Assembly: GCF_032191835.1 (NCBI RefSeq)
Contig: NC_083223.1
Span: 229,524,001 to 229,588,000, forward strand
Length of the DNA stretch: 64,000 bases
Direction: 5' to 3'
Source: Heteronotia binoei
Taxonomy: Eukaryota
In this document: positions 7,654-61,845 of the stretch, one piece after another
How positions within the stretch are numbered: position 1 is the first letter of the stretch
Layout of the letters: every line of letters begins with the position of its first letter
Made by a program: the position numbers and the translations under genes
Notes under the pieces: generated by a model
The model's database searches: none
Told to the model about the DNA's origin: nothing
What the model saw: only the letters and a program-made list of their open reading frames with translations

Positions 7654-10229
7654 CTGTGGAGCCAAGGAACACATTGAGTTTGAGTTGTTTTACCTTGCCA
7701 TATGGATTCCCAGTCTTTCCCTGAGAAGGACAGGATGGAACATGTGAAGGCTTACTTGCATTTCATCTTTATGGGAAAGGCTTGAAGATAACAACGTGTA
7801 AAAAGGAATCTAGTGGTCATTGTGACTGAGTTAGTAGAACAGCATAAAAGGAGTACTTCTGGTCACACTAATAGTTCATCTAGCTCAGCATCCTGTTTCC
7901 CACAGTGGCCAACAAGTTTCCTGGATGGCATTGCACAGTTGTCGCACTTAAGTACTTATAGTAGTATTTCTTTTGAGCATGGAGATTCCACGCAGACGTC
8001 ATGACTCTGTCTACTCCTGTTTTAAAGTTGTCTTAAACTAGTGGACATCACTATATCCCATGGTAGTGAGCTCCACAAGCAAATTATGCATTGTGTGAAG
8101 AATTACACATGGATACATGAAATGACTTTATACTGAGTTGCTCTTTTGTCTACTCTGAGTGACAGCAGCTCTTCAAGGTCTCAGGCAGAAGTAACATCAC
8201 CTGTTACTTGATCCTTTTAACTGGAGATGACAGGAGTTGGACCAATGGACTTTTTTTCCTATCCGAAATCCAAGGAAAATGACCAGCCGCACAGAAGTTT
8301 CTGTCTCTGGATTACACTTTCACTGCTGGGCATTTAAACCCAGATCTCCCTACTTTGTCAACACTGCCTCTTCAGATTATCTTCTTCTGAGGAAGCTATA
8401 AAGTGATGCTGTAGGTGTAATCACAGAATCTCCCCTATAATATAATTATCCAGACAGACTGGCCATGGGTTCACCTAATCTCCCATTGTTGCTCAATCTC
8501 AATGGAGAGCAACCCCCCACCCTCCAGCCCCAGGACAGACAAGGGTTGAGCCATTGTTTCACAGAGGAGAGAAAGAAACCCTTCCCTCAGTTGGCTGAGG
8601 GCTCCGCCATCTCCTCATCTGGAAGGAAAACAGCTAGAGACAGAGGGAAAAAATGGTGTCTTGTGGCAGCAGACCAGATTCAGGAAGGGAGGGAGGAAGG
8701 GAAAGAGAGAAGACCAACAATGTTACCAGAGAGACAGTGTTGTCTGAACATATCACTGAAGGCCTCTGAGGAAGAACTCATTGGGGCCAGTTGTGACTAG
8801 GGCTGCCAGTTCCAGGTTGGTGGGAAATTCCTGGAGATTTTGTGATGGAGCTTGAGGAGGGCATAGGAGTTAGGGCTTTAGAACAGGGTCTGCCAGACCA
8901 AGGTTCTTGCTGTGGAAGCTGACTGGGTGATTTTGGACCAGTCACATACTTTCAGCCTAACCTACCTCACAGGGTTGTGCAGACCAAAGTGGGTGGGGGA
9001 AGAGGAGAATGATGTAAGCTGCTTTGGTTCCCCCTCACTGTGAAGAAAGACTGCCCTTTTCCTAGGTAGAGGTTACAGGGAGAGGAGAGGTGATGGAAAG
9101 CTGAAGTCAAAAGGGCAGTTAAAGAGAAGGAGATAGAGTTGCCAACTCCGGGTTAAGAAATTCCTGGAGATTTAAGGGATGGAACCTGGAGGAGGTGAGG
9201 CTTGAGGAGAGGTGGGACCTCAGGCAGGTACAATGCCATACACTCCACCCTTCAAACCAGCCATTTCCTCCTAGGGAACCATTGCTGCCAATCTCCAGGT
9301 GAGGGCTGGAGATCACTCAAAATTACAGCTGCTCTCCAGATAGCAGAGATCAGCTCCCCTTGAGGTGGGGAGAGTGAATGCCTTCACTTGGGTGGGAAGG
9401 CAGCAAGGGTGGGGGGGCACTCACCTAGAGCCTCTTTCTAGAGCCCGTTATATTTTTTTCTTCACAACAGCCCTCATTTCGAGTTTAGAATAAAAATACA
9501 ATCCCTGCTTTAAAGAGCTAAAACAACAAGTATACCAAGACAACCAGCATTCTAGAAGAGGAAAAGACAGACCCTTTATGATTAGACTAGCAATACAATC
9601 CTAAGAACACTTTCCTGGGAATAAGCATCATTGGATAGAATGGGGTAGGACTATAAATATTGCAATTATAACCAGGTATGCCAAGATGTCACCAGGAACA
9701 GTAACTGTTTGGTACAGAGATCTTTGTTTGCTGATACATGTAATGATCTTTGAATCCAAGTTGTGAAGCATTAAGTCTCAGAGTTCTCTATGTTAACTGC
9801 TTACTATTAATAAATGTAGTGTGTGTGCATGTTTGTGTTTGTTTTGATGCCTTCTCTGATGTGCATAAACTCCATATGACAAGTATAGATATGGAGAATG
9901 GAGCAGGATCATTACAAAAAGGTTATATTTTCTGAGCAGAGTTGCTTTACATTAGGACCCCATTATATTGTTTGAAAGAATACATCACACATACAGGCAA
10001 ATTCATTTCATTCTGAATGAATTTAGCATGCTGAACTCTAAATCATTTTTATGATACTTGTCTAACATATGAATACATGATTGGTTAAGCCAACTAGTAT
10101 TTAGTCACTGGAGATCAATATGAAAAACTGACTCAGATAAAAGCTACCTTTGAATCCCTTCTCACCACTGTTTAAGTAATCTATTCCCAAACAACAAGGT
10201 GATGGTTACGGCAAGAGACAATGACTGAG

Positions 10230-10708
10230 TGTCAGCGTAGGGGCATTGGAGTTCCAAGAATGAATAGACTTATTTTAGTTTAAAAATAAGTTTCCATTTA
10301 TTGATTACAACAATGTTGCACAGCGCAGAGTCATTGATACTAATGACGAAAGGGGTTCAAGCATAAGCATTTATGGATACACATCAAAGCAAGGAGCCTT
10401 AAGTTGCTTCCCATAATAAAACCTGGGCTGTCTCGTTGACAGAGAGCATTTCTCTTATCTGTTATCTCCCCGGCATGGCCTGTCTCTCCTCCTCGCTGTG
10501 GCCTTGCTAGGCCGGCCTGAGAACGAGTTAGATGTTTAACACTTCAAAGCTCTCTGGGAAGCTCTCTGGCACCTGGACTGTCTCTCCCAGCTATCCTTCA
10601 CATTTCGTTACAGTTTCAGGGTTAGTGAGGCGAGGTGCGAGGGTGTTAGTTAGCATTCAGATAAACATTTAGGGCAATAAAGACAAGCTTCAATGCACAT
10701 AGCTGACA
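10230..10708 (-). repeat. Gypsy 3' LTR
   Basis: TGTCAGC...GCTGACA termini. 6 substitutions versus 15621-16099 by manual comparison (about 1.3%). Minus-strand AATAAA at 10302-10297. Confidence 0.97.
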
Positions 10709-10724
10709 TACTGCCCCCCCCCTA
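10709..10724 (-). other. Polypurine tract of the Gypsy element
   Basis: Minus strand TAGGGGGGGGGCAGTA directly precedes the 3' LTR and overlaps the pol stop codon. Confidence 0.85.
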
Positions 10725-13700
10725 AGCTCTTGCTCGGGGTTTGTCTGGGTGCAGTAGGTAAAATTGCTTTAACAGTTGAGGAGCGTTTAGGTCGGAGGAT
10801 TTCACCCACTCATCACAACTAGGCGGGAAGTGGCGCCAGCGGATCAAATACTGTAGGACACCCCGCTGCAGCCTAGAATCTAAGATCTCCTTCACCTCGT
10901 GATGTTTCTGGCCCCTCACTAGAATAGGTTCCGGTTCGGGGCTCCGGAGATGCCACTTCGACCCACCCGGATCGCGACGGATCAGACTGCAATGGAAAAC
11001 AGGGTGTATTTTACTGAACAGTTTGGGCAGGTCTAGTTCGACTGTCACCTTGTTAATCACCTTCTTTATTCAGAATGATCCCAAGAAATGATACGCTAGT
11101 TTCCTGGAGGTCTGAGGTAGCGGGAGGTTCTTGGTGGACAAGAATACAGTCTCCCCCACCTTGAAATCCCACCCTGGGCTATGTTTTTTTGTCAAACTAA
11201 GCCTTGTAATCCCTTTTTGCTTCCTCCAGGTTGTCTTGTATCATTTCCCAGGATTTCTCCAGGTTCCCCCACCATTGTTGGCATTCGGGAGATAATGGCG
11301 TGTCCGTCCCCTCTGGGAGGGAAGGGAACGGTTTGCCCTCATAGCCATTTACTGCTTGGAAGGGGGAGACCTTGATGGAGCTATGCAAGCTGTTGTTGTA
11401 GCTGTATTCTGCAAAGGGCAATAAGTCCACCCAATTTGACTGTTGAAAGTTTATATAGCAGCGTAAATACTGCTCCAGAAGTCCATTAACCCTCTCACTC
11501 TGGCCGTCCATTTGCGGGTGGTAAGCTGAGCTGAGCCCTTGTTCCATGCCCGTTAATTTGCAAAACTCCCGCCAGAAGTTGGCAACGAACTGTGGCCCGC
11601 GGTCACTAATGACCTTATCGGGGAACGAGTGAACCCGGACCACGTGGAGGAAGAACAACTGGGCCAGTTCTTTTGCAGTAGGGAGTTTGCGGCAAGGAAT
11701 GAAATGCGCTTGCTTCGAGAAGGTATCTACCACTACTAGTATTACCGTTCGGCCACGAGATGGTGGTAGCTCTACTATAAAGTACATTGACACTACCGAT
11801 CACGGCCGTTCTGCGGAGGAGAGGGGCTGCAATAACTCCGACACTTTGCCCCCCCCTCCGTTTTGCCATTAAGCAAGTCGGGCAAGTCTGGATAAATTCT
11901 GAAATGTCTCTTTTCATATGGGGCCACCAGAACTGCCGGTGGACTAGGTGGAGGGTCTTCACGTACCCAAAATGCCCTGCTAGTTTGTTGGTGTGGCAGT
12001 GTTGTAGGACTTCTACCCACAGGGATTTCGGGACGTAAAGTTTTCCTTCGTGGTACCAGAACCCCCCTTCCCCCTTCTCTATTCCCGCGGGGCGGCTTTC
12101 CCCCTCGGCCTCCGCCTCGGCTTTGAGCTTGTTCCCCCCACACGGAATTGTGTCTTGGTTGGTCCTTTTTGATCTGGTTTGTACTGCCCCCGCTACGGCT
12201 TCGGAGGGAATTAGTGAGTCTATGACCTCTTCGCGCTTGCTTTTGTGTTGGGGAAGCCGCGAGAGGGCGTCGGCTAAGAAATTTTTCAATCCCGGGATAT
12301 GCCGTAGTGTAAAGTCGAATTTGGCAAAAAAACCCCGCCCAGCGGATCTGCTTCCCCGTCAGTTTTCGGCGCCCCGTGAGAGCCTCTAAGTTTTTGTGGT
12401 CTGTCCAGATCTCAAAGGGGACCCGGGCGCCTTCTAGCCACGATCGCCATGTTTTTAAGGCAAATGTGACTGCATAGGCCTCCTTGTCCACACTGACCAA
12501 TTCCGCTGTTCGTTTGAGAATTTGCGGGAGATGTAGGCGCACGGTCGCAAGCGCCCTTCCCTATCTTTCTGCATTAATATCACTCCCATGGCCGTGTCGG
12601 AAGCGTCACACTGGACCACGAAGGGTTCGAGCTCGTTCGGGTGCACTAGCACCGGCTCGCTGGTGAACAGGCGTTTGAGGGTGTCGAACGCCTGTTGGCA
12701 TTGACTGGTACAGTTTAGCTTGGCCCTGGGTTTTTTTTGCTTCAGGCCCCTTTCCTTTGGTCTACAGGAGGTCGGTCAGGGGGAGGGCAACCTTAGCGAA
12801 CCCCTGAATGAACCCCCTGTAAAAATTTGCGAAGCTGAGGAACGATTGGAGCTGTCTACGTGTCCTCGGGGGTTCCCACTCTAGCACGGCTTGTATCTTT
12901 GCCGGGTCCATGGCTAATCCCTGACCGGATACCCTGAACCCCAGGTAGTCTAATTCCTTTTGGTGGAACTCGCATTTCGACAGTTTGGCATACAGTTTGT
13001 TTTTATACAGAGTTTCTAAAACTTCTCGAACCAACTTCACGTGTGAGGGGAGGTCTTTTGAATAAATAATGATGTCATCCAGGTACACCACCACCCCCTG
13101 GCACAAAAACTTTCTCAGCACGTCATTGATAAAGTTCATGAACACTCCCGGGGCCCCCTGAAGTCCGAACGGCATTACTAAGTACTCAAACTGTCCCATC
13201 GGGGTGTTGAACGCAGTTTTCCACTAGTCCCCCTCCTTAATCCTTACTCTGAAGTACGCGTCTCGGAGATCTAGTTTGGTGAAAATGGATCCCTTCGAGA
13301 CCTCACTCAGGAGGTCCTTGATAAGGGGGAGGGGGTATGCATTGGACATGGAAAGCCCATTAATCCCGCGAAAATCAGTACAAAGTCTCAGACTCCCATC
13401 CTTTTTCTTTCGGAACAGAACCGGCACCGCATGGGGGGCCGTGGCCGGCCGGATGAAACCCCGCCAGAGGTTTTTGTCTAGGAATCTACGCAGCTTCTCT
13501 TTTTCGGCCCACCCCATGGAGTAGAGTTTGGCTTTGGGCAGTGCCTGGCCTGGGATCAGTTCTATGGCACAGTCCGTGCTCCTGTGCGGCGGTTATTCGT
13601 CCACCTTGATCTCGCTGAAAGCTCCCTTCAGGTCTCGGTATTCCCGTGGGATAGACTTTACCTCCTCTATGGTTACACATAGTCTCTCGTTCTTGGGGGG

Positions 13701-14198
13701 CGGTTTGGGGCCCCACGCCTCTCTCCACAGGTGCGAGGTGCACCGTCGGTCAATAAAGTCTATCGTGTGTTCCGCCCAATCTATCTTTGGCTGGTGCCGA
13801 GCTAGCCACCCCACTCCTAACACTATATCGAAGGAGCACGACGGGGCAATAACAAATGTTTTCAGGTCCCAATGGTCGATTATGCCCATCGGGATCTCCT
13901 GTGTCTGCTCCGTACAGGGTTTCCCCCTCATTCTAGTCCCGTCCATCTGTTCAAACTCTAGGGGCCGTGGTAGGAGCTCTGTTGTGAGCTCCAGCATTTC
14001 TACAAATCAGGGGGTTATAATCTCTCTGGTGCATCCCGAGTCGATGAGGGCTCGAGCGTGCACGAATCTCTTCAGTTTTACATTTAGCAAAGTCAAGGGG
14101 ACAAACATAAGTTCTCCAGAAATTCTCACCCGTAGTGGTGCCGCTTTCTCCGGTACCTGCCGCTGGGCACCCTCTAGTGCAGGTCGGTCCCGTTTCCC
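10722..14198 (-). pseudogene. Gypsy pol (protease, RT, RNase H, integrase, chromodomain), disrupted
   Basis: LIDSGCT (Asp codon at 14042). RT LRLCTDFRGIN...KLDLRDAY and VVVYLDDIII. RNase H QCDASD and TDHKNL. Integrase HHCC, VVDTFSK...SDRGPQF...GQSERVN, HPVFHCSL. Chromodomain HEVKEILDSR...QYLIRW...EWV. Several frameshifts and stops. Confidence 0.95.
14137..14198 (-). promoter_or_regulatory. -1 programmed ribosomal frameshift signal (G GGA AAC plus H-type pseudoknot) at the gag/pol overlap
   Basis: The heptamer at 14198-14192 is in the zinc-knuckle frame. The -1 frame is open for 52 codons to the protease Asp. Stems: ACCTGC/GCAGGT and GGTGCC/GGCACC. Confidence 0.8.
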
Positions 14199-15566
14199 GC
14201 CGGCTCCGGCTCCCAGGGATAAGCGGTGCTGCTGCGGCTGGATTCCTTCGGTTTCTTGAGTCCCCCCGTGGGACCCTTAGCGGCTGGGGTGGTAGGTCGG
14301 GCGCGCTCAGGGCAGTTGGCAGCTAAGTGGTTCGGGTCCCCACACTGGTAGCACTTGCGGGGCCTAGGGAAGGGTTTGGTGGTCCCCCCCCCCTGGGTGT
14401 CTTCTTAGCCTTTACCTTTGGGGTTGATCGGCTCTCTTGGCTGGGCTTGCCCTGGTGCCCCTGGCGTTGGATGGCCACCTCCTTCATGTTCGTTTTGACT
14501 TCCCCGGCTAGTTGGATCCACCCAACGAGGTCGGCCAGCCTCGCCTGCTGGAGGACCCAATCCAGGATCCCGGCGTTCAGCCCTTTCTTGAATGCCCTAA
14601 TCTTCATGGCCTCGCTCCAGCCTCGGATTTTTCGGCAGTGGTTGTGAAACTCCAGAGCGTACTCCCGGATCGACCTGCTCCCCTGCCGGATTTCGTCTAT
14701 CGCGGCGATGGCTCGGATCTCCCGCAGCGGGTCCTCAAATTGGGATAGGAGGGCCTGCAGGAAACCCGCAACCATGGCCACGGCTGGCCCACGGATCTCA
14801 TGGAGGCTCACGTACCACAGTTGGGCATCCCCCATCATCCTCAACCCCATGTAGGCCACTCGGCTGTGCTTGTCTGGGAAAGTGTTCCCCCAGTAGTGCA
14901 TGTAGCTGGTGGCTTGGAGGACGAAGTACTCCACTTTGTCAGGGGTGCCATCGAAGGTGATATCCAGCTCCTGGGTCTTCACTTTTGGGGCGGCTGGCCC
15001 AGCCGGGGCCGCGGCTGCCCCCGTGCCCCCCGGCTGCACCGGTTGCACGAGGATGGACAGTGGCAGCACAACAGTTGCTCCCGGGGCTCATGGCAGGGCC
15101 CGTTCGATTTGCTTCTGCACCTCTCGCAGCATCAGAGTAAAGTTTGCCTTCATTTCTTGCCTCAGGTCGCACCCCAGGATTTCCATCTCTCTCCGCAGGT
15201 CCTCGGTGGGGTCGCGCTTCGGGGAGGAGGCCCTCGAATCGCACCCATCCTCGCCCTCCGAATCGGGTTGGCGGTCCCCCAACAGCGTATGCTCTCGGGC
15301 TCCCCCCTCTCCAACCATGCCGCTCCGCCAATCCGGGCTCCCGCGGTCCTCCGTCTCTCCGGGGGTGTGGAGGAGGTTGGCGTGCCTCGCCGCTGCCTCG
15401 TCCATCAGGGTAGTAGAAGTCTGAGATTCCAGGAGGCCTTTGGGGTGATGAACAGCGCGTGGCTGCTCACTTTCTTCGCCTTCCGCTCTGTGATGTAGCA
15501 CGGCGGGGTCTCCGGCTTCTGGTTGAGTGTAAAAGGCTCTCGGTCGTCGAGGACTTCTTCAGCCAT
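14174..15566 (-). pseudogene. Gypsy gag (capsid plus CCHC zinc knuckle), disrupted
   Basis: Likely ATG at 15566. Capsid motif TFDGTPDKVEYF...AQLWY and zinc knuckle CYQCGDPNHLAANC from 14353. In-frame TGA at 15090-15088, frameshift at the G10 run 14393-14384, natural stop TAG at 14176-14174. Confidence 0.9.
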
Positions 15567-15607
15567 TCGCTAATAAGTAACTCACGTCCGATAAGCCCCT
15601 TGTGAGG

Positions 15608-15618
15608 ATTAGTATCAA
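15608..15618 (-). promoter_or_regulatory. Primer-binding site of the Gypsy element, self-priming (non-tRNA) type
   Basis: Minus TTGATACTAAT begins 2 nt after the 5' LTR. It is the exact reverse complement of minus ATTAGTATCAA inside the LTR (15735-15725) and lacks the TGG start of a tRNA 3'-end PBS. Confidence 0.8.
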
Positions 15619-15620
15619 AA

Positions 15621-16099
15621 TGTCAGCTTAGGGGCATTGGAGTTCCAAGAATGAATAGACTTATTTTAGTTTAAAAATAAGTTTCCATTTATTGATTACA
15701 ACAATGTTGCACAGCGCAGAGTCATTGATACTAATGATGAAAGGGGTTCAAGCATAAGCATTTATGGATACACATCAAAGCAAGGAGCCTTAAGTTGCTT
15801 CCCATAATAAAACCTGGGCTGTCTCGTTGACAGAGAGCATTTCTCTTATCTGTTATCTCCCCGGCATGGCCTGTCTCTCCTCCCCACTGTGGCCTTGCTA
15901 GGCCGGTCTGAGAACGAGTTAGATGTTTAACACTTCAAAGCTCTCTGGGAAGCTCTCTGGCACCTGGACTGTCTCTCCCAGCTATCCTTCACATTTCGTT
16001 ACAGTTTCAGGGTTAGTGAGGCGAGGTGCGAGGGTGTTAGTTAGCATTCAGATAAACATTTAGGGTAATAAAGACAAGCTTCAATGCACATAGCTGACA
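15621..16099 (-). repeat. Gypsy 5' LTR
   Basis: 8-bp terminal inverted repeat TGTCAGCT/AGCTGACA. On the minus strand, CATAAAT (TATA-like) near 15765-15759 and AATAAA at 15693-15688. Confidence 0.97.
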
Positions 16100-16727
16100 C
16101 TGAGTCTTATTGCCTATTAATTTCAAAAAAGAGATGCATCGTAGGTTGATATATAATAGCACAATGCTGTATTTTACTCCATATACTTGAATTGGCTCTA
16201 TCAAGGCTTTTTTTGTAGCAGGAACTCCTTTGCATATTAGGCCACACACCCTTGATGCAGCCAATCCTCCAAGAATTTACAGGCCTCTTAGTACAGGGCC
16301 TACTGTAAGCTCCAAAAGGATTGGCTACATTAGGGGTGTTTTGACGTAAGTTTTATAGCGGGGCAGACATTGTAGCTCCAAAGCAGTGTGCACACACGCC
16401 AGCAGAGGTTGGTACTATTTACAATTTTATTTACAATATATATATACATAGTCCTTATAGTCAGTCAGAGTTCTTACTGACAAACTGCTTTACCAGACAC
16501 CTGATACCACAATGGCATAGACTGGCAAGTACAGCACAGACTTATATACAGAGTTATGTGTCCTTTTACCCAATCAGTGCAGACATGCTGAGTCACTGAA
16601 GTACCACCTGCAGGCTGATGCAATATGTCCAGTCATGTGATCTTTACCTGTCAGATTGATCAACATGATCTGTCTGCAAGTTGCTATCTTGTTAAGGCAT
16701 TTCTACTTCACATTTCTACTTCTACTT

Positions 16728-19469: not shown

Positions 19470-20257
19470 TGACGGAAGTTTTATAGCAGGGTAGACATTG
19501 TAGCTCCAAAGCAATGTGCACACACAGCAGCATAGGTTGGTACTATTTACAATTTTATTTACAATGTATGTACATAGTCCTTATAGTCAGTCAGAGTTCT
19601 TACTGACAAACTGCTTTGCCAAACACCTGTTACCACAATGGCATACACTGGCAAGTATAGCACAGACTTATATACAGAGTTATGTGTTCTTTTGCCCAAT
19701 CAGTACAGACATGCTGAATCACTGAAGCACCACCTGCAGGCTGATGCAATTTGTCAGTCATGTGATCTTTACCTGTCAGATAGATCAACATGATCTGTCT
19801 ACAAGTTGCTATCTTGTTTAGGCATTTCTACTTCATATGCTGGCATGTTTAGCCTAATATGCAAAGGAGTACCTGCTACAAAAAAAGCCCCAGGCTCCAT
19901 TGATTTAGGGCAATCATGATTTTTCTTCTTCTTTAAGTGCAAAACACCTCTGAGTTCTAAGGATGGTATGCTCCCTTCTGCTTTCCTTCATGTGTGACAT
20001 GGATACTGAAGGTTTCTGGATTCCCCAAATCACAATTTATTGTGATGTCCAGATCAGATAGAACAACAAACTGTGGGCTGTTCTCTCATTTCCAAATGAG
20101 GATTCTGAATTAAGGATAAACCATGACTGGAACCTTAGGATTGTAGACAATTAGTTTTCAGCAGGAAGTGCTGGTGAATTGTCTCATTACCTTTTCACCA
20201 GCAGTCCCCTTTGTCCACTTTTCATATTCTTCCTGAGGTATCAAGATCTGTCAGGAC

Positions 20258-31588: not shown

Positions 31589-31810
31589 ACATAGAATCAC
31601 AGAGTTGGAAGGGACATCCAGGGTCATCTAGTCCAACCCCCTGAACAATGCAGGAAATTCACAAATGCCGCCTCCTAAATTCACAGGATCCTCACTGCTG
31701 TCAGATGGCCATCTAGCCATTGTTTAAAAACCTCAAAGGAAGGAAAGCCCACCACCTCCTGAGGAAGCCTGTTCCACTGAGGAACCACTGTAATGGTCAG
31801 GAAGTTCTTC
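31589..31810 (-). mobile_element. CR1 3' fragment
   Basis: FWLNIRKNFLT...QWNRLPQEVVG remnant and an ATTCTATG-type tail. Confidence 0.8.
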
Positions 31811-45205: not shown

Positions 45206-45672
45206 GCTATCATGTCACCCCGCAGTCGATGTTTCTCCAAGCTAAATAGCTTGGAGAAACATCGACTGCGGGGTGACATGATAGCAGTTTACAAGATTAT
45301 GCATGGGATGGAGAAAGTAGAGAAAGAAGTCCTTTTCTCCCTTTCTCACAATACAAGAACTCTTGGGCATTCAATGAAATTGCTGAGCAGTCGGGTTAAA
45401 ACAGATAAAAGGAAGTACTTCTTCACCCAAAGGGTGATTAACATGTGGAATTCACTGCCACAGGAGGTGGTAGCAGCTATAAGCATAGCCAGCTTCAAGA
45501 GGGGATTGGATAAAAATATGGAGCTGAGGTCCATCAGTGGCTATTAGCCACAGTATATACCGGAACTGTCTGGGGCAGTGATGCTCTGTATTCTTGGTGG
45601 TTTGGGGGGGGGGGCAAAGTGGAAGGGCTTCTAGACCCACTTGTGAACCTCCTGATGGCACTTGGGTTTTTT
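45206..45672 (+). mobile_element. CR1 3' fragment (same family as 37626) with a fold-back inverted duplication at its 5' end
   Basis: LEKHRLRGDMIAVYKIMHGMEKVEKEVLF...; perfect 39-bp inverted repeat 45206-45244 / 45247-45285. Confidence 0.9.
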
Positions 45673-55832: not shown

Positions 55833-56555
55833 ATCATAGAATAGAATCATAGAGTTGAAAGGTACCTCTAGGGTCATCTAGTCCAACCCCCTGCACAATG
55901 TAGGAAACTCACAAACACTTCCCCCTAAATTCACAGGATCTTCATTGCTGTCAGATGGCCATCTAGCCTCTGTTTAAAAACCTCCAAGGAAGGAGAGCCC
56001 ACCACCTCACGAAAAAGCCTGTTCTAACAGTCAGGAAGTTCTTCCTAATGTTGAGCCGGAAACTCTTTTGATTTAATTTCAACCCATTGGTTCTGGTCCT
56101 ACCTTCCGGGGCCACAGAAAACAATTCCACACCATCCTCTATATGACAGCCCTTCAAGTACTCGATGGTGATCATATCACCTCTGAGCCGCCTCCTCTCC
56201 AGGCTAAACATGCCCAGATCCTTCAACCTTTCCTCATAGTACTAGGTCTCCAGACCACTCACCATCCTCCTACGGACCCGTTCCAGCTTGTCTATATACT
56301 TCTTAAAATGTGGTGCCCAAAACTGAACACAATACTCCAGATGAGGTCTTACCAGAGCAGAGTAAAGCAATACCATCACATCATGTGATCTGGACACTAA
56401 ACTTCTGTTGATACAGCCCAAAATTGCATTTGCCTTTTTAGCCACCGCATCACACTGTTGACTCATGTTCAGAGTATGATCCACTAAGACCTCTAGATCC
56501 TTTTTGCACATACTACTGCTAAGACAAGTCTCCCCCATTCTATAACCATGCATGG
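55833..56555 (-). mobile_element. CR1 3' fragment
   Basis: [30 protein letters not shown]; tail CTATGATTCTATTCTATGAT. Confidence 0.9.
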
Positions 56556-61678: not shown

Positions 61679-61845
61679 CAGACAGGTTAAAACGGATAAA
61701 AGGAAGTACTTCTTCACCCAAAGGGTGATTAACATGTAGACTTCACTGCCACAGGAGGTGGTGGCGGCCACAAGCATGGTCACCTTCAAGAGGGGTTTAG
61801 ATAAAAATATGGAGCAGAGATCCATCAGTGGCTATTAGCCACAAT
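61679..61845 (+). mobile_element. Short CR1 3' fragment ending in (TG)n
   Basis: Nearly identical to the reverse complement of about 37735-37885 and similar to 45390-45550. Confidence 0.85.

Follow-up and report, generated by a model that had tools for sequence, protein, structure and literature searches.

The minus strand of a Heteronotia binoei locus carries what is probably a programmed −1 frameshift site of a squamate chromovirus family of the sushi type, stimulated by RNA structure and preserved in a copy of the element that is itself dead. The locus lies in a window of 64,000 nucleotides on contig NC_083223.1, and all coordinates refer to this stretch. The heptamer GGGAAAC is very likely the slip site of the family, and a predicted two-stem pseudoknot downstream of it is, with moderate confidence, the stimulator. 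We infer both that ribosomes would slip at this site and that the stimulus would come from the knot and not from a different fold. The proposal builds on the observed anatomy of the element and its reading frames, on a pairing potential above chance, and on the recurrence of Gag C-termini that consist of Gly-Asn plus about five residues, those of PEG10 included.

The junction between gag and pol is made up of two overlapping frames and the heptamer that stands in their overlap.

14192–14198, minus strand: slippery heptamer GGGAAAC, read G_GGA_AAC in the register of the zinc-knuckle gag frame
14010–14276, minus strand: first part of the pol (−1) frame, 89 open codons with the protease motif LIDSG at 14048–14034 (ORF translation)

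Since the gag frame is broken upstream, at a run of ten Gs (14393–14384), the term gag frame denotes at the heptamer the frame of the zinc knuckle. An earlier sequence-only reading of this DNA had placed the heptamer in the gag frame and had gag terminate after five further sense codons. Both statements agree with the present translation, in which G_GGA_AAC (14198–14192) stands in the CCHC frame, the stop TAG follows at 14176–14174, and the C-terminus of Gag reads ...AGNGTDLH. The same reading let the −1 frame run open into LIDSG. This is accurate from 14276 through the motif, but it left out the stop at 14009–14007, which closes the −1 frame 63 codons past the slip site. The gag and pol frames overlap by approximately 100 nt, and the open stretch of the −1 frame begins 78 nt before the heptamer. 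Such is the layout of a canonical −1 cassette, with an X_XXY_YYZ heptamer in the zero frame and a downstream gene that is open in the −1 frame and overlaps the upstream one. GGGAAAC occurs twice in the element, and the occurrence at 14198–14192 alone has the frame and position of a slip site. The other one (13919–13925, minus strand) lies within the protease region and reads GGG_AAA_C in the pol frame; as it is out of slip-site register, no role is seen for it.

Downstream of the heptamer, two stems can be drawn whose topology is that of an H-type pseudoknot. Their parts, together with a competing partner of stem 1, are as follows.

14185–14191, minus strand: spacer, 7 nt (sequence)
14179–14184, minus strand: stem 1, 5′ arm ACCUGC, six Watson-Crick pairs with 14160–14155
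14172–14178, minus strand: loop 1, 7 nt, containing the gag stop TAG at 14176–14174 (sequence)
14166–14171, minus strand: stem 2, 5′ arm GGUGCC, six Watson-Crick pairs with 14142–14137
14161–14165, minus strand: inter-stem loop, 5 nt (sequence)
14155–14160, minus strand: stem 1, 3′ arm GCAGGU, paired with 14184–14179
14143–14154, minus strand: loop 3, 12 nt (sequence)
14137–14142, minus strand: stem 2, 3′ arm GGCACC, paired with 14171–14166
14128–14132, minus strand: CGGGU, which competes for bases one to five of the stem 1 5′ arm and pairs with them in the nested minimum-energy hairpin

The 7-nt spacer and both stems had been given in the sequence-only reading with the same coordinates, and each stem indeed consists of six Watson-Crick pairs. 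The frequency at which such a structure arises was estimated in several ways. When the 92 nt that follow the heptamer were shuffled 5000 times with dinucleotide content preserved, nine shuffles contained an H-type knot that starts 4–9 nt downstream and has two perfect stems, each 6 bp or longer. A crude knot score, which admits stems of at least 4 bp, permits G-U pairs and sums the energies of the two hairpins, gave −17.4 for the real sequence, and the best knot consisted of the two stems already named. Shuffled sequences scored −4.9 on average (sd 4.8; z −2.6), and 19 of 2000 reached an equal or better value. In the real element such a knot begins at just two positions; expressed as anchor positions that have one at that spacing, this corresponds to 0.2% of the element, and the figure for the whole window is 0.7%. 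The pairing potential is hence real and above chance, and several folds are possible for the region.

The cassette sits in an LTR retrotransposon that occupies 16099–10230 on the minus strand (5,870 bp) and is complete in structure.

15621–16099, minus strand: 5′ LTR, 479 nt, with TG...CA ends (local alignment of the element ends)
10230–10708, minus strand: 3′ LTR, 479 nt, preceded by a purine/G-rich tract (local alignment of the element ends)
16100–16104, with a second copy at 10225–10229, minus strand: target-site duplication CTCAG, 5 bp (flanks)
14326–15087, minus strand: gag capsid piece, 254 aa (Pfam Retrotrans_gag 3.4e-12, Ty3_capsid 7.4e-07)
14384–14393, minus strand: ten-G run with a one-base change of the gag frame, between capsid and zinc knuckle
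14177–14404, minus strand: C-terminal piece of gag with a CCHC zinc knuckle (Pfam zf-CCHC 4.8e-06)
10725–14006, minus strand: rest of pol (Pfam RVP_2, RVT_1, RT_RNaseH_2, Integrase_H2C2, rve and Chromo; tblastn with squamate Gag-Pol proteins)

Pfam domains follow one another along the minus strand in the order gag, zf-CCHC, protease (PR), reverse transcriptase (RT), RNase H (RH), integrase (IN) and chromodomain. The last of these (Chromo, 4.4e-09) is found on the piece 11069–10725, at the integrase C-terminus. DUF4939, the gag domain of PEG10/RTL type, scores 25.3 bits on the capsid piece, which is under the cut-off. The presence of gag, PR, RT, RH and IN domains together with a chromodomain puts the element among the Ty3/gypsy chromoviruses, the group that includes sushi-ichi, and its LTRs and complete set of domains are those of sushi-ichi and other vertebrate chromoviruses (Ty3/gypsy, Metaviridae). 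Judged by these domains and by its gag relatives, the nearest of which are all squamate, the element is classified as a sushi-type Ty3/gypsy chromovirus, in line with the sushi-type retrotransposon that the sequence-only reading had recognized.

At least ten disabling lesions affect this copy, and only the local cassette is intact. In the N-terminal part of gag, an in-frame stop (15090–15088) lies immediately upstream of the capsid piece. Capsid and zinc knuckle share one frame in relatives, so the frame change at the ten-G run reflects either a lesion or a misassembled homopolymer. One contig of the RNA run X1, described below, terminates at 14386, within this run. The pol region contains stops at 14009–14007, 13595–13593, 13226–13224, 12764–12762 and 11072–11070, further ones between 12457 and 12359, and three frame changes. 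On account of these lesions, the gag frame break and the protease stop among them, the copy cannot make Gag-Pol. The two LTRs match at 473 of 479 positions (98.7%) without a gap, which indicates a young insertion, and yet stops and frame changes in the coding part number at least ten. A copy that was already defective may have been mobilised in trans and inserted in that state. Just inside the 5′ LTR, the primer-binding region (15590–15620, minus strand) begins TTTTGATACTAATCC...

Because G_GGA_AAC encodes Gly-Asn, the C-termini of Gag proteins can serve as a proxy for slip sites in relatives. A HMMER scan of 1.84 billion representatives returned 850 gag relatives. The best of these, which come from squamate families, are only 33–37% identical to the gag of the window. 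Named squamate relatives belong to Anolis carolinensis, A. sagrei, Sceloporus and the geckos Eublepharis, Paroedura, Sphaerodactylus and Heteronotia, and some of those from Anolis carry the automatic name 'PEG10'. PEG10 RF1 of ten marsupial species (P0083) was also matched, with an E value of 3e-11 and 28% identity. The survey set comprised the 52 gag representatives that end no more than 130 residues past the zinc knuckle and are without a protease motif. GN followed by zero to six residues forms the C-terminus of 15 of the 52, against 0.77 expected from the frequency of GN elsewhere in the same proteins (binomial p ~1e-15). Among these 15, five is the commonest number of residues after GN. 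Marsupial PEG10 RF1 ends in GN+SLAPL, with five residues as in the GN+GTDLH of the present element. Two further endings, GN+GQDLL in a gecko protein (P0024) and GN+GRDLLQ in a Logan protein (P0038), resemble GN+GTDLH. P0026 and the Anolis protein P0002 likewise have five or six residues after GN. The Asp-Leu that P0024 and P0038 have in common with the window gag falls on the 5′ arm of stem 1, an overlap that is at most suggestive.

A quick maximum-likelihood tree of 102 gag proteins, unrooted and with many weak forks, places the window gag among squamate families and marsupial PEG10 in the other major clade, with 96% SH-aLRT for the split. GN endings are present in both clades. An ending of GN plus about five residues is therefore a general trait of these vertebrate elements and points to no special link with PEG10. 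The spread of the layout 'Gly-Asn, about five codons, stop' over both clades, PEG10 included, argues that it was already present in mobile ancestors.

The nearest neighbour of PEG10 on the gag tree is a Logan protein of 313 aa from a 4,538-nt contig (P0072). Over 254 columns it shares 50% identity with marsupial PEG10, and its C-terminus reads GN+GPGLA. As a mobile stand-in for the PEG10 ancestor, this protein could come much nearer than the present element. Pairs of Gag and Gag-Pol proteins in Anolis (P0155/P0004 and P0167/P0011) were rejected as a source from which to read a slip site. The members of each pair differ within the same frame, so they represent separate copies or gene models, as opposed to a single sequence read in two frames.

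In a working copy, ribosomes translating gag would arrive at G_GGA_AAC, where the tRNAs on GGA and AAC would sometimes shift back by one base and re-pair on GGG and AAA. The slipped fraction would continue through protease, reverse transcriptase, RNase H and integrase to yield Gag-Pol, and the remaining ribosomes would terminate five codons on and yield Gag. The pause that favours slipping would most likely come from an RNA structure whose first stem begins 7 nt past the heptamer. For this structure the best candidate is the predicted H-type pseudoknot, in which each of the two stems has 6 bp and loop 1 contains the gag stop.

Other readings of the same region differ in what they make of the structure. 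The slip site could be real and its stimulator another fold, either a bulged hairpin formed by the 5′ arm of stem 1 with 14132–14128 plus stem 2, or a simple stem 1 hairpin; we regard this as possible but doubtful. Nested folding of 72 nt has such a bulged hairpin as its minimum-energy structure (−20.3 kcal/mol), with the same 7-nt spacing. In the nested ensemble stem 2 is paired at 88% and stem 1 at approximately 5%, the latter being scarce because its 5′ arm can pair with 14132–14128 and thereby close the long bulged hairpin. However, the nested fold is not unusual by comparison with shuffles (z −0.03), whereas the two-stem knot is rare in them. The pairing with 14132–14128 also consists of five pairs only, one of which is G-U, and pseudoknots are what PEG10 and retroviral sites of such type use. 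It appears quite improbable that the two stems arose by chance in a GC-rich stretch, with low frameshifting caused by the heptamer alone or by something unseen. The region does have 58% G+C, no Rfam family matches the cassette, nested folding gives no signal, and the stems were originally found by a reader who was looking for them. The shuffle and positional controls nevertheless yield p values of ~0.002–0.01, and the stop in loop 1 and the spacer of 5–7 nt match the PEG10 signal that has been studied experimentally.

A further alternative, which we consider highly improbable, is that there is no recoding site at all, the offset between gag and pol being one more indel lesion and the working form having had both in one frame. 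Several stops and four other frame changes are present in this copy, and gag and protease are fused in closely related squamate families: in a Logan protein (P0007) and a protein of Sceloporus undulatus (P0013), one open frame leads from the zinc knuckle into the protease. Families that use a frameshift and families with a fused gag-pol would thus coexist in the squamate clade. What a lesion would leave to coincidence is the canonical heptamer in the correct frame, the five codons before the stop, a spacing more frequent than any other in the 15 relatives, out of 52, that have GN endings (PEG10 included), and the knot at the right distance. Moreover, the −1 frame opens well before the heptamer, as it does where gag and pol genes overlap. 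A programmed −1 site with a structural stimulator, most plausibly the two-stem knot, is the reading we prefer.

The closest point of reference is PEG10/Edr of therian mammals. Its −1 frameshift takes place on GGGAAAC, followed by a 5-nt spacer (PMC2800197), and PMC13622457 describes a pseudoknot of H-type whose loop 1 holds the gag stop. Both sources concur with the sequence-only reading, which had credited PEG10 with GGGAAAC plus a pseudoknot. Approximately 80 nt downstream of the slip site are required in vitro (Mikl et al.). The present element has in common with PEG10 the heptamer, a −1 frame that leads into a DSG protease, a homologous gag, and a gag stop located in loop 1 of an H-type pseudoknot, the fold being predicted here. 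The five sense codons from heptamer to gag stop, which the sequence-only reading had also ascribed to PEG10, recur in marsupial PEG10 RF1 with its GN+SLAPL ending. In other respects the two differ. The spacer measures 7 nt in the element and 5 nt in PEG10, the gag of the window belongs to a different major clade, and a dead mobile element with LTRs, reverse transcriptase and integrase contrasts with a domesticated single-copy gene. The description of the cassette as PEG10-like hence stands for the heptamer, the five codons and the stop in loop 1, but not for the spacer or the gag clade.

An unlikely extension of this comparison is that the cassette is a letter-level homologue of the PEG10 knot, with stems in register and only compensated substitutions between them. 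If it were true, squamate sushi-type families would have retained, as mobile elements, the recoding signal that was passed down to PEG10, and the evolution of this mammalian signal could be followed further back than the mammals. Henriques et al. (2024; PMC11011659) state that the mobile ancestor of PEG10 'almost certainly' frameshifted and that their proxy, Gypsy-15_Ano, does not; the present family would then supply the frameshift-bearing 'ancestral proxy' which theirs is said to lack. Stems that could be aligned with those of PEG10 would also provide a natural variant series for studying how the mammalian signal works.

Pseudoknots at the gag-pro junctions of SRV-1 and MMTV offer a second comparison. 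They share with the predicted structure an X_XXA_AAC heptamer, a spacer of 5–8 nt and two stems of about 6 bp. In the SRV-1 knot, too, the stems measure 6 bp and the loop that crosses stem 1 has 12 nt. Unlike knots of this type, the candidate has a loop 1 of 7 nt and an inter-stem loop of 5 nt, both long for a compact frameshifter knot, and tight coaxial stacking is less obvious. GGGAAAC is used as well in other genes derived from Metaviridae, namely PNMA3 (Ma3), PNMA5 and rodent Rtl3 (PMC11299033), but these are independent domestications.

Reviews hold that the PEG10 frameshift was inherited from a sushi-ichi-like element (PMC3406341, PMC10570562), and a −1 frameshift between gag and pol is regarded as typical of LTR retrotransposons and kept in PEG10 (PMC3406341). 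In the light of the literature on PEG10 frameshifting, a GGGAAAC cassette in a reptile sushi-type element is what the field expects. The cassette is an expected example of a known mechanism and not a new mechanism. With it, the known rule of Gag-Pol synthesis by a −1 slip on GGGAAAC, which covers sushi-type retrotransposons as well as PEG10, their domesticated descendant, gains a squamate example. The survey of C-termini at the protein level is the more useful result, and the cassette as it stands amounts to a routine annotation of a dead element.

A word-index protein search with the gag piece gave no match, and the same search with an Anolis gag protein (P0002) retrieved only that protein itself. 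Viral contigs held no relative by gag query, RT query or a degenerate DNA pattern of the cassette. The same was found for metagenome contigs, queried with the protease piece and a gag alignment, and for prokaryote genome contigs. In the PDB, a sequence search with gag matched neither PEG10 nor another capsid.

Only one public run, X1, contains the stretch, and it is a metatranscriptomic RNA library. Compared with 10200–16150, it yielded 969 contigs that are alike by 80% or more, and for 96 of these the figure is 99% or higher. Two contigs span the junction between gag and pol (13228–14151 and 13891–14215). The element family and its kin are abundant in this sample, with either transcripts or carried-over DNA as the source.

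Within the 64-kb window, no second copy of the element was found. Three other direct-repeat pairs, 88–93% alike, occur at 16438–16629 and 19564–19755, at 31591–31774 and 55841–56024, and at 45388–45552 and 61679–61843, and these are probably parts of other interspersed repeats.
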